From the NCBI GenBank assembly GCA_054661495.1, contig BAAFSQ010000002.1, positions 1 through 32,000 of the forward strand: a stretch of DNA of 32,000 nt, written 5' to 3'. The stretch's first letter is position 1. Each line of letters begins with the position of its first letter. Both the position numbers and the translations under genes were made by a program. Shown here piece by piece: positions 2,554-29,298 of the stretch. Under the pieces are notes generated by a model. The model was not told where the DNA came from, made no database searches, and saw only the letters and a program-made list of their open reading frames with translations. The DNA comes from Zygophlyctis sp. KS116 (lineage: Eukaryota > Fungi > Chytridiomycota).

Positions 2554-3490
2554 TTAAGCAAATGCTTGCGAAACGCTTGAATACTGTGATTCAATTTCAG
2601 CTTTTCCAAATGCCCTGTCCAAACTTGCTCATTATCAGAGACTTCAGGATTTTCATGAATAATTTCATATAATTCTTTATCCCAGTCAACTTGATTCTCG
2701 ATCTCGTATGAAATAGCTTTAGAATGATAAAATCTAATCGATTGGCTTGAAATCAGATTGTATGCATTTGCCTATTATTTAATGTTTGTAATAAATACAA
2801 TTTCATCTAATGTAACAGTATCTGGTTGTCTTAGTTTAGAAATGAACAACTTCCAATTTTCATCATATTTCATAATGTCCGATTCTAGATTTGAAAAGCA
2901 GACTTGTCTTTCTAAACATGCCTCTCTCACTAGTACACCAGATACAGAATTTATCAAATGGTCATTCACTGGTTGGCTTTGCAGCCAATCATTCACATCT
3001 GTGATACAATTTTTCAAGTCGAAAAGAACAGCCTTTGTTGGTATATGTGGACCTAAAAGTATTAGATTTGTACTGAATCACCTTTAAATATTTCAAAGGA
3101 TAGAAATGATAAATCTATACTTAATGTTGGGCGAGTATGAGTTTTCTTGATATCAATAGATTTCATCTGTTTATGATCAAATAGATAGTATGCATGCTTT
3201 CCATTAATATCCCAACATAATAAAACCGATGGTTGTTTATTACTGATCGCCTTGAATAAAATCACCTTCTGACTAGATTCTAAACCAGATGTGGACTTTT
3301 CCCTTGCCTGCTGTTTCTTACGTCTATTCACCGCTCGAGTCGGCGCAAATTCCAGGACTTTATCATTGTACTTGAATCGTGAAAGACCTTGAAAGAATAT
3401 TGGACATTCGAATTTATCTTTACTAATTGTAGTGATTGGATTCATTTTTATTAACCAGTCTTGAGCATCTAAATAGACTCTAAAATCCAT
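2550..3490 (-). CDS. Hypothetical protein (3 exons, ~290 aa)
   Basis: ORFs 3062-3490 and 2775-3017 join in frame via intron 3053-3081. Intron 2772-2798 extends the frame to TGA at 2550-2552. No recognised family motif. Confidence 0.7.
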
Positions 3491-25189: not shown

Positions 25190-26453
25190 CTACTGATCAA
25201 GTTTAAGAGACTTGTTTGCCTTGAAATTATTTCTATCGGGAGATAATGCTCTCTTTTTATTTGTTCTAAAAATTAAGTAATTTTAAGCATACTCTTCAGA
25301 CTTTGGAGAAATATCCATTGAATTAGTTGCTTCAGCTTGTAAGTTTGATTGTCTGTCAGCTTTACTTTTAGATATAGCATTTGCAACAGCTTCCGCAATA
25401 CGTGGAGCAATTTTCAAATGCTCGGGTGATTGATACTGTGAACATGATGGGCATTTAAACCTTTTTGCAATATCAGCATTTTCCAACAATGAAAAAGTTA
25501 TACCTAAAATTTACATTTAAAAATGTTACATTCTTTACAAAAGGCAGTATTACAACAAGATACTACAACAGGGTCTGTAAACAGTTTATCACAAAGAGAA
25601 CATTTCAAATCACTTGAAAAAGAATCCAATTCACCGACAGCCTTTGTTCTAGTCATTTTATTCCAAGCATCTCTAATTTTTTTAATATAAAAATCAATTT
25701 ACTCATTTGGTTGTGCAACAACAATCTCACCTGTAGTTGTCACCATTAATCCAGCCGCATCTTTACTTTCTACAGTCTTCAAAAACATTTTTGGTATTCC
25801 AGTTGTTCTTTTTAATTTTGGTCTATTATCATAGTCCTTATTTCCCAAAGTGGGACATTGATTAATAAAATGACCTTTTTCACCACATCTAAAGCAGACA
25901 TAATTCGCATGTGGAGTTTTTTCACCTTGAGCCTGCATTCCTCTTCCCATCCCCATTGGACGATACATTGGCCGTTGACTATAAATCAATAAATTTCACC
26001 AAAATACCTATTAGCTGTATTTTCCCATTGAGCCGATTGTTGCTTAAACATCATCTTGATCTTATCTTCTTCAGACATATCAGAATGTTGCATTAAATTT
26101 GGTCTTAATTTTGGTCTATAAGCGATTGGCTGAGCTTTGGAGAATGTTGGTACAGCCTTTGAATAGCCAAGAGGATTAACTCCCAAATACTTTTGAGCAG
26201 TTCCTTTTCCTGCTCTTGTTGCAGGCCTTCTAGAGACTAAAACCGATGAATTTTTAGGAATAATTTCATTATCGTCCAAGATCTCTTCTCCTGACGACGA
26301 ATTCCAAAGAATTAAGTCAAAATCATTTCCTTTTCCCAATTTCTTTGTGATCATGATGTCCTTTTTAAGATCAAATACTGAAATTCCTGATCCGTCGAAT
26401 TTGCATGTGTCATAGTCCTTTGCGATCTTGAATTTGTAGAAAACTGAGCTCAT
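25190..26453 (-). CDS. MPE1: Cleavage/polyadenylation factor subunit Mpe1/RBBP6 (DWNN, zinc knuckle, RING)
   Basis: MSSVFYKFK..KDYD...FDG.GISVFDLK (DWNN), YVCFRCGEKGHFINQCP, KRTTGIPKMFLK, RING-like CSLC...CC...FC.EC...CPSC. Stop TAG ends at 25190 after the last intron. Confidence 0.93.
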
Positions 26454-26539
26454 GCAAACAAAACTTGTGTTTTAGGATATTAGGCAATCGAACCTCGGCG
26501 CTGGCGGTTTATCAAAAAAAAGTTTAGGAAAAATGCCAA

Positions 26540-26839
26540 AGTTTTGCACCCGCCGTCACGTTATCTCTAATCCCAGACTGTACCTAGTGCTTAATGATGG
26601 ATGTCTCACACACGAATGAATTTCATTCTTTAACCCTAAGTTGTATCTCTCTCCTCTTTATAAATTTAAAGAATCCTGAATTTGTATGCACAGACATAAG
26701 AATTACGCCTACCTGCGCATCCTACGGGATAGAGCCTTGGCTCGAAATTTAAGAGTGGTGTATGGTTCTTTTTGTCTCATGGTTGGAATCTGGGGATGGC
26801 TAAAGACGGCAAATGCGGTGCAAATTCTTTATATTTTTG
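26540..26839 (+). ncRNA. Candidate telomerase RNA (~300 nt)
   Basis: Template-like TAACCCTAA (26631-26639), 2 nt after hairpin GAATGA/TCATTC (26614-26628). Long interrupted terminal stem 26543-26577 / 26789-26824. Arm 26692-26777 ends in ATCC-TACG-GGAT and GAGC-CTTG-GCTC hairpins. Sm site ATTTTTGG at 26833-26840. Confidence 0.7.
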
Positions 26840-26915
26840 GTAGAATTTACCCTAACCATAAACATTACCACTGGGCGCCCATTGGAAGATTTAGCCTACA
26901 CCCCAGACGTTGACC

Positions 26916-29298
26916 ATGTATTCTGATAACGGATACATTGAATTGGACGATTTGGATGATTTGGACGATTTGGATGATATCGACACAACAGATCTTAATG
27001 ATACGCAAGTCATTGACTCTAAATTGGCAAATCAGATCGCTGATGGACTTGTGCCGAAAACAGATGATCCATTGTTGCCATCCTTTACTTTACGGGTTCT
27101 GATTATAGGTACAATATGGAATATATTCTTGGCTATTTCTAATGGAATATTTTCATTCAGAACGACGTCGTTTCAAGTTCCTGGGATCTTTGCAACTCTT
27201 TTAAGTTATCCAATGGGGATATTTCTAAGTAGAATCTTGCCAAGGAAAAAAATAAATATTTTTGGCAAAAGGTGGGAATTAAATGATGGGGATTTTTCAA
27301 TAAAGGAACATGTATTAATATACATTATTGCATCAGGTATGAAATCCGATCAATCAATTAATCATTTTATTAACTGTTAGGGGGAGCAGGAATCGCGTAT
27401 GGGTTGGATAATGTTGTTACACAGAGAATGAGCATGTTTATGGGGAACTCTACAATTAATTTTTTTGAAGCTCTATTATGGGTATTGTCAAGTCAATTTA
27501 TTGGTTTTGGGATGGCTGGGATTATGAGACGTTTTTTGATTAAGCCGGCTGCAATGTTGTGGCCAACATGTTTATCAGACGTTGCATTGTTTGTTGGATT
27601 TCATGAAAAATCAACAGATGCAAACCAACTCAGTAGATTTAAAATGTTTTGGTGGGGACTTTTGGGAATGTTTATATACTCTTGGTTTCCAATGTATATC
27701 TCTCCAGCGCTACAATCAATACCAGTCTTGTGTTTTATTACTTCAAATTCAAAATTACGGTTTTTAGCGTCTGGATGGCCAATACCAGCAGGATATGGAG
27801 GCGTTGGATTGGGTACTCTTTCCGTATTCTCTTTAGAAATTTAATAATTAGTTTGATTGGTCACAAATAGGAGGATCCAGTATGACTATTCCTTGGTGGG
27901 CTACAGTGAATTTTGTGATTGGAAATATTATCTGGGCATGGATTTTGACGCCCTTGTTATATTATTCAGATGCTTTTGGGATGGATTCATCTTTAAGGTC
28001 TCATGGATTACCTGTCTTGAATACAGGATCACTATTTAACAAGAATGGGACTGCAATTAATGCTCTCAGTTTGTATAACCATACAACGTACGATATTAAT
28101 CTGCAAGCATACAACGAGAATGCCCCAATATACATCACTACACTTTTTTCCATGTCTTATGCTTCCAGTTTCCTTGGGATTACAGCGGCTTTTACTCATG
28201 TCTTTTTATGGTATGGAAAAGATATTGTGCGCCAATTTAGAGCGACCTTGTTACAATTAGATGATAAAGCTGATAATTCTGATATTCATAATCAACTGAT
28301 GAAAAGCTACCCTGATTTTTCTGAAATCGATTATCTAATATTTCTAAGTTTTTGTATTATTCTTCAAGTGATTGTATCATTGTAAGTTCCTTGTACTTTA
28401 TATACGTAGAACGACTTCTTTTACAATGCCTCTTTGGTCTGTGTTTCTCTGTTTAGCCATGTCACTCTCATCAATTTTACCTCTGGGAATAATCAAAGCG
28501 ATTGCTGGATCGTCTCTTGGTCTTAATGTTCTAACTGAATTTGTGATTGGACTTCTTATACCTGGGAGCACGGTTGCCGTCATGTCATTTAAAAGCCTTG
28601 GAACCAATTCTGTCATTCAAGCACTGGATTTATTGAGTGACTTAAAATTGGGACATTATATGAAGATAAATCCTATTCATATGGTATACGCACAGGTAAA
28701 TTTAATTATTAAAATTAGTTGTATGGGACTTTTATAGGAGCATTATTCAACACTATATCTTGCTTTTTCGTAATGGATTTCATGAAGGATATACTAGGTA
28801 CACCTGATTGGCAAGTATCTAGCTATACTATATTCTATAATGCAGGAGCAATTTGGGTAATTTCCTACTAATTAAAATTCCAAGGGAGCTATTGGCCCAT
28901 CTAGATTTTTCGGAATAGGATCAGTCTATCAAGGATTGTTATGGTGTTTCCCTCTTGGTATTTTACTCCCCATTGTACCATGGCTCCTAAACAGGACCTA
29001 CCCCTCACCCTACTGGCACCTTGTGAATGTACCTCTTTTATGCTCCATGACTGAACCTGGAAGAGTGCAAAACTATATAATATGTTCTACTCTAGTCTCT
29101 TGGTACTTTCAAAATTACATTTTCCGTAAATATCATGATTGGTGGACTAGATATAATTATATACTTTCTGTTGGATTTGCCAGTGGAGTCTCAATCTGTG
29201 GCCTATTTATAACCTTTCTACAGGAATCCGGACATGAATTTCCTTATTGGTATCTTAACCCTCAAGAAAGAGAATCATCTTGTAAGCCATATATTTAA
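26916..29298 (+). CDS. OPT-family oligopeptide transporter
   Basis: DDP.LPSFTLRV, FSIKEHVLI, LSSQFIGFGMAGIMRRFLIKPAAMLWP, DIHNQLMKSYP, GLNVLTEFVIG, SDLKLGHYMKI.P, WGAIGPSRFFG, WWTRYNYILS. Several 23-40 nt introns. Confidence 0.94.

Follow-up and report, generated by a model that had tools for sequence, protein, structure and literature searches.

What is encoded by the 462-nt gap that separates two divergent protein-coding genes in the genome of Zygophlyctis sp. KS116? The window, by which we mean the whole stretch of 32,000 nucleotides that was analysed, contains this gap at positions 26454-26915. It is bounded on one side by the start codon of MPE1, whose first exon, encoding the DWNN domain, lies on the minus strand (25986-26453; Pfam PF08783, E 5e-30), and on the other side by the ATG at 26916 of an OPT oligopeptide transporter gene, with its first exon on the plus strand (26916-27338; Pfam PF03169). 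An earlier note, made from the sequence of the window, had proposed a compact telomerase RNA for this gap; the gap has the length given there, and each motif quoted is present at its coordinate. Our analysis supports the proposal. The RNA is very probably the telomerase RNA of a Rhizophydiales-like chytrid, a reading that rests directly on the transcription of the region as a discrete unit, a conserved fold with covarying stems, an invariant template, a P6/P6.1 junction with the P6.1 motif and a TERT gene in the genome, and that agrees with the absence of any Rfam assignment.

The Zygophlyctis assembly comprises 12.7 Mb in 1175 contigs, and DNA of this genome was detected in freshwater samples. 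The spliced genes were searched exon by exon. For the MPE1 exon the best named relatives were Globomyces and Gorgonomyces, followed closely by Polyrhizophydium and Batrachochytrium, and the kinase, NOP9, LRR and guanylate kinase genes are kept near MPE1 in Gorgonomyces as in the window. Best matches and synteny, rather than a tree, point to a host in or near Rhizophydiales.

A transcribed RNA and its homologues

Three lake metatranscriptomes from three studies yielded one contig each over the region (26564-26808, 26551-26820 and 26554-26819), all with zero mismatches. The contigs carry no information on strand, exact ends or level; all three end just inside the terminal helix that closes the structured core (26543-26824, plus strand, 282 nt), which fits a discrete RNA slightly shorter than 300 nt. 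None reaches OPT; the contigs cover neither the OPT gene nor most of MPE1, and a piece of MPE1 was present in one run only. In a DNA run with partial cover, MPE1 and OPT were represented by pieces and the RNA region by none; the contig pattern therefore does not reflect an assembly bias towards this region. The earlier note had made its case depend on a discrete transcript of about 300 nt: contigs confined to the region exist in three RNA runs, and both they and the closed core agree with that size. The mature RNA would be about 285-300 nt long, depending on the position of its 3' end.

Rfam scans of the region (2.5 kb, E up to 10) and of three homologues assigned it to no family and returned weak chance matches only; the assignment to SRP RNA, RNase P/MRP RNA or an snRNA that the earlier note had seen as a danger did not appear. 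The Rfam models place U1, U2, U4, U5, U6, U3, SRP and a P/MRP-like RNA all at other loci. We therefore rejected an SRP RNA, which is found on contig C223 with 104 bits, as well as a spliceosomal snRNA or U3; an H/ACA domain was also rejected, no such architecture being apparent by eye. A highly divergent RNase P or MRP RNA might likewise have about 300 nt and paired ends, and searches of the genome for RNase P RNA, with RF00009 and with a pattern that had no positive control, found none elsewhere. Yet this reading is barely credible, since the scans just described gave no P or MRP match, the P4 strands (CR-I and CR-V) are absent by eye from the invariant blocks on either strand, the P/MRP-like RNA sits on contig C45 (10528-10695; a very short RNA of 168 nt, 37.7 bits against RF00030), and the 3' flank of the candidate is of the Pol II snRNA kind.

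Folded as a single sequence, the window RNA is weakly better than its shuffles (z -1.6 for the plus and -2.1 for the minus strand), and homologue L022 reaches z -3.6. Given this weak folding and the lack of an Rfam family, the case rests on expression and relatives. Separate searches with the flanking exons retrieved syntenic MPE1-OPT gaps (L033, L022, L028/29, L030/31 and L034), making six distinct sequences including the window, at identities of 65-98% (98% for L033, 65-86% for the others). They share an alignable block of ~282-296 nt, and the flanks do not align except in L033. The consensus structure has 85 pairs with 93.3% of cells paired, and 21 of the 85 show compensatory (two-sided) changes in an alignment where no more than five sequences are well separated and all belong to a single narrow clade. 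None of 500 shuffles reached the consensus pairing and slid partners paired at 41-48%, controls that lean in favour of the structure because it was derived from the same alignment. Comparative structure is far beyond chance. Cells with G-U outnumber those with A-C by 62 to 6, which, together with a cUACGg loop, fixes the plus strand, which the earlier note had favoured on the basis of G-U pairs. The same set of gaps bears out the pattern for which that note had proposed to look, a template that is invariant while the stems covary.

The gap is a divergent promoter region, and CCCTA/TAGGG motifs recur in flanks and upstream of U3, as would be expected if the element were a structured 5' leader or promoter of OPT or MPE1 with TAACCCTAA as a telobox-type Myb protein site. 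This explanation is very improbable: the RNA contigs all end by the terminal helix and none continues into OPT, the compensatory changes reflect selection on RNA pairing, and in L024, which is more distantly related, OPT and MPE1 still stand head to head, only ~150 nt apart (2925-3075), and the RNA is lacking. The RNA gene has thus moved into or out of the MPE1-OPT gap. L024 also carries a short tandem duplication across the MPE1 start. Within the fetched 1-20 kb, synteny walks in the named chytrids Polyrhizophydium, Globomyces and Gorgonomyces, and at the more distant OPT loci L024, L032, L035 and L038, ended without a suitably sized gap or without a model match, so that the RNA either lies elsewhere in those genomes or has diverged. 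An exact-pattern scan of the genome contig collection with the template block gave no match; two 18-nt matches to the block in viral contigs were dismissed as chance, with no CR4/5 match there.

Template domain and CR4/5-like arm

Overall, a long interrupted terminal helix (26543-26581 paired with 26779-26824; 34 pairs, 10 compensatory) opens into two arms. The long interrupted stem described in the earlier note stands as far as its closing helix, which is conserved, and fails at its inner register: CCCAGA/TCTGGG is an alternative to the conserved pairing. The conserved register joins 26573-26576 to 26783-26786 and 26578-26581 to 26779-26782, with a C-G/U-A change in three of the six sequences.

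The first arm holds the template domain within a core-enclosing helix (26588-26606 paired with 26670-26690; 15 pairs, 7 compensatory), in which the bulged base 26603 varies between G, U and A. A hairpin (26614-26628) lies 2 nt 5' of the template, just as had been claimed, and Aspergillus boundary helices mostly lie two bases from the template as well (PMC3603654). Its 5-bp stem is invariant in all six sequences, with one of five loop positions invariant; because the stem never varies, it comes without covariation proof.

The template UAACCCUAA (26631-26639), read earlier as 1.5 copies of the TTAGGG complement, is identical in all six sequences and lies within an invariant block of 17 nt (26630-26646). 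All nine template positions and all seven positions of the 3' flank are invariant, compared with 27 of the 95 other unpaired positions. The bases on both sides of the template break the repeat, which makes it exactly 1.5 repeats long, and templates that start and end with UAA are known to make TTAGGG (PMC3603654). No stable helix involves it; a weak 4-bp hairpin that shows no covariation is the only one able to cover it. On paper the template could also pair with an invariant GGUUG near the 3' junction; that strand is better placed in the terminal helix, where it covaries. By itself the 9-mer TAACCCTAA is common, with 222 copies in the genome. Copies are clustered many-fold on a few mid-sized contigs (C131, C133, C137, C159 and C185), which fits interstitial patches of telomere repeat.

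The second arm (26692-26777) is CR4/5-like and single-copy in the genome. Its long P5-type helix (26692-26714 with 26752-26777), with 21 pairs, 97.6% of cells paired, three compensatory and five one-sided changes, ends in a three-way junction. P6 (26719-26730) is a stem of only 4-5 bp, invariant in all six sequences and without the pyrimidine bulge of vertebrate P6; it carries the cUACGg loop, replaced in one homologue by a 5-nt U-rich loop. A single linker A and P6.1 follow (26731-26744, the hairpin proper being 26732-26743), with a 4-bp stem containing GAG/CUC as in vertebrate P6.1, a 4-nt loop with an invariant U (26737) and G (26739), and then an invariant G. The closing pair of P6.1 covaries (C-G in two sequences, U-A in four), and in all three loop sequences, CUUG, UUUG and UUAG, the second base is U and the fourth is G. 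In known telomerase RNAs the P6.1 consensus is a 4-bp stem with the loop NUNGN, or a loop of 4-5 nt in fission yeast and Saitoella; most activity is lost when the loop U or G is altered (PMC3592445); a conserved single A joins P6 to P6.1 and a G follows P6.1 (PMC3950677). This P5/P6/P6.1 junction, which is absent from the earlier note, is the strongest diagnostic for a telomerase RNA.

These features also bear on a different reading, in which a structured small Pol II RNA of chytrids, of an unrelated and so far undescribed kind such as a scaffold or guide RNP, uses the 17-nt loop as a protein-binding or antisense element and resembles template and P6.1 by chance. Such an RNA need have no conserved pseudoknot, and none was found; further blocks besides the template are invariant, the common 9-mer resembles a local regulatory motif or the snRNA 3' element, and the RNA assembles in small metatranscriptomes where adjoining mRNAs mostly do not, as would also suit a more abundant RNA class. 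We nevertheless regard chance resemblance as unlikely. The template, the boundary hairpin 2 nt from it and a P6/P6.1 that has precisely the loop U and G are found together in telomerase order; dinucleotide-shuffling the RNA 20000 times gave a template followed by a P6.1-like hairpin in 5 cases; and the three variable loop positions are those that are free in known P6.1 loops.

3' end formation, TERT and the telomere repeat

Downstream of the terminal helix lies a U-run (26833-26840, plus strand). The Sm site reported there is canonical in the window and in L033 only; its consensus, A-U5-6-G-R, is not conserved, four of the five other homologues having U5-U8 without a closing G. The U1 and U5 Sm sites of Zygophlyctis likewise end without G, so the candidate RNA may still have an Sm site. 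Next comes a DNA element of the CCTA-A-CC-TAAAC type (26849-26863, plus strand), similar to an snRNA-type 3' box, that is common to the 3' flanks of the U1, U2, U4 and U5 genes; it is located 16-28 nt past the ends of these RNAs and is absent after U3, U6, SRP and the P/MRP-like RNA. Twelve bases (26844-26855) are identical to the flank of one U2 gene. Because this element is shared with U1, U2, U4 and U5, we infer that Pol II makes the RNA and that its 3' end is formed as in snRNAs. No counterpart of the snRNA upstream elements is conserved ahead of the candidate RNA, which may use the divergent promoter of MPE1, whose start codon is 89 nt away; OPT begins 91 nt 3' of the terminal helix.

Three other possibilities were considered at this end. 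The second telomere-like word, at 26849, might have been a template copy or a branch point and is neither; it is the element found after U1, U2, U4 and U5. Pol III transcription, suggested by the U-run, is disfavoured: in several homologues, internal runs of T5-T6 match the terminal one in length, neither the upstream element of U6 and SRP nor a TATA box is present, and the 3' flank belongs to the Pol II snRNA type. Spliceosomal 3' cleavage of the ascomycete type was rejected because even L033, at 98% identity, has lost the GT that follows the U-run and the apparent branch point belongs to the snRNA-gene element.

The survey of snRNA genes also gave observations of its own. The telomere-repeat-like CCTA-A-CC-TAAAC word, a candidate 3' box or roadblock site, occurs in L039 and L040 (both 1692-1735), L044 (two U1 genes), L045 (U4) and L046 (U5). 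An upstream element like CCCACAAT lies near -65 in Pol II as well as Pol III genes, namely U1, U2, U4 and U5 (L044, L039/40, L045 and L046), U6 (L041) and SRP (L042). A second element, like AACCGCAGC, is found at about -45 in Pol II snRNA genes, and a TATA box in U6 and SRP. By analogy, this two-part arrangement looks like the animal-style SNAPc promoter system, here in a fungus. U5 is represented by five divergent copies in two tandem clusters (C456:220-712 and C51:52195-52520), U1 by a tandem pair starting with GC rather than AU (C548:191-680), and U6 (C436:156-268, L041) by a gene with a divergent 5' end and 3' stem (61 bits).

A TERT gene was identified on contig C66: the TRBD is matched strongly (E 2e-23), TEN, RT and CTE weakly, and the four domains follow the right order. 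In front of the TRBD, an RSRIFY motif (L019:5113-5742) recalls the CP2/TFLY motif, which contacts the template boundary. Neither a run of four TTAGGG nor a terminal telomere array was found in the assembly, and searches for Pot1 and TRF/Tbf1, run without a positive control, gave no match. Runs of two TTAGGG number 15, against 6 in the reversed control, and near-threefold runs 8 against 1. The telomeres of Batrachochytrium, which by the placement of the host near Rhizophydiales is of the same order, consist of TTAGGG, and in its earlier assembly, too, no contig ended in that repeat (PMC11797018). TTAGGG is the putative terminal repeat of the host.

By analogy with known telomerases, templating, TERT binding, the polymerase and the 3' end would fit together as follows. 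The RNA would be a single-copy, plus-strand RNA polymerase II transcript of ~285-300 nt, with its 3' end made like those of the host snRNAs. Its ends would pair into the long helix from which the two arms leave. In the arm that encloses the template domain, the 3' UAA of the template would align the telomere end, the next six bases would be copied to add GGGTTA, and the hairpin two bases beyond the template would stop copying. The other arm, with its P5/P6/P6.1 junction, would bind the TRBD of TERT and activate TERT through the loop U and G.

The pseudoknot and comparison with known telomerase RNAs

A pseudoknot would have to lie in a variable segment, U-rich and then A-rich (26647-26669), of which 3 of 23 positions are invariant. 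This segment is 19-23 nt long among the homologues, and the canonical fungal or vertebrate pseudoknot does not fit into it. The helix drawn for a pseudoknot in the earlier note (26659-26667 with 26678-26686) breaks in all distant homologues and in L033, and no conserved triple-helix pseudoknot or crossing helix was found across the six homologous sequences. A small H-type fold can be drawn in each homologue, with its second stem ending on an invariant AAGA (26669-26672). Its first-stem register is not shared, the best fold, reached by 2-74 of 150 shuffles, is marginal, and its formation would be at the expense of part of the core-enclosing helix. The pseudoknot is probably either absent or cut down to a weak one of ciliate size.

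Pseudoknots are essential in the tested fungal and vertebrate RNAs, missing in trypanosomes and weak in ciliates (PMC5175330). Lacking a conserved one, the chytrid RNA does not fully match the animal-fungal type of telomerase RNA; this lowers its formal membership of that type and not its reading as a working telomerase RNA. Tentatively, and with rather more doubt than confidence, we consider that it may be an opisthokont telomerase RNA of less than 300 nt with a vertebrate-type P6.1 and no pseudoknot at all. If so, it would present a combination undescribed in the literature examined, trypanosomes being without both and P6.1-bearing animals and Dikarya having both, and the triple-helix pseudoknot would be dispensable in a fungus, through a loss or owing to an equally simple ancestral fungal RNA.

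Described fungal telomerase RNAs measure 900-2400 nt (PMC9564094), and the shortest putative one ~500 nt (PMC12506658). In the literature searched, which reached few subscription papers, no chytrid telomerase RNA was found. The fungal ones there come from Ascomycota and Basidiomycota, and the sole claim outside Dikarya is an unvalidated ciliate-like match in Lichtheimia without homologues (PMC4133162). If confirmed, the RNA described here would be the first well-supported telomerase RNA from an early-branching fungus in the literature searched, and much shorter than any described fungal one. With its covariation support it would supply the missing outgroup for the shared animal-fungal telomerase RNA, and would picture the ancestor as compact, P6.1-bearing, snRNA-processed and perhaps without a complex pseudoknot. 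It also yields a covariance model with which cultured chytrids can be searched for the gene, and offers a naturally minimal RNA to reconstitution and structural studies.

The template domain resembles that of Neurospora crassa and Aspergillus RNAs, which share a 9-nt template beginning and ending with UAA for TTAGGG and a boundary hairpin 2 nt 5' of it; filamentous ascomycetes also have the core-enclosing helix and the P5/P6/P6.1 junction with loop U and G (PMC3592445, PMC3603654). In contrast to these RNAs of 1600-2100 nt, the chytrid RNA has ~290 nt and no PK1/PK2/PK2.1 pseudoknot, a P6.1 loop of 4 rather than 5 nt, P6 and P6.1 together of 27 nt against their 39-nt minimal fragment, and no conserved 5' splice site for spliceosomal 3' cleavage. 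Schizosaccharomyces pombe TER1 and the Saitoella RNA share the 4-bp P6.1 with a 4- to 5-nt loop (PMC3592445) and a U-rich or Sm-type site near the 3' end; the chytrid RNA is a quarter of their size, its Sm consensus is not conserved and it has no intron-linked 3' processing signal. The putative Malassezia RNA of ~480-500 nt, like ours a comparative prediction, is compact, located in an intergenic gap and equipped with template, boundary, CR4/5 and a putative Sm site (PMC12506658). The chytrid RNA is some 200 nt shorter, lies outside Dikarya and lacks the covarying pseudoknot reported for Malassezia (PMC12506658).

The CR4/5-like arm recalls vertebrate CR4/5 (human and medaka; PMC3950677) in the GAG/CUC stem of P6.1, U-N-G-N before CUC, the single A linking P6 to P6.1 and the G after P6.1, and overall size is close to that of teleost telomerase RNAs. 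Differences from vertebrates include one extra loop-side base in P6.1 and no bottom A-U pair, a very short and bulge-free P6, a hairpin rather than P1 as boundary, and the lack of an H/ACA domain and a P2/P3 pseudoknot. Finally, Trypanosoma brucei TR, with its short-helix template core, provides the precedent for a missing pseudoknot (PMC5175330); unlike that RNA of ~1000 nt, which has no P6.1, the chytrid RNA keeps an intact one.
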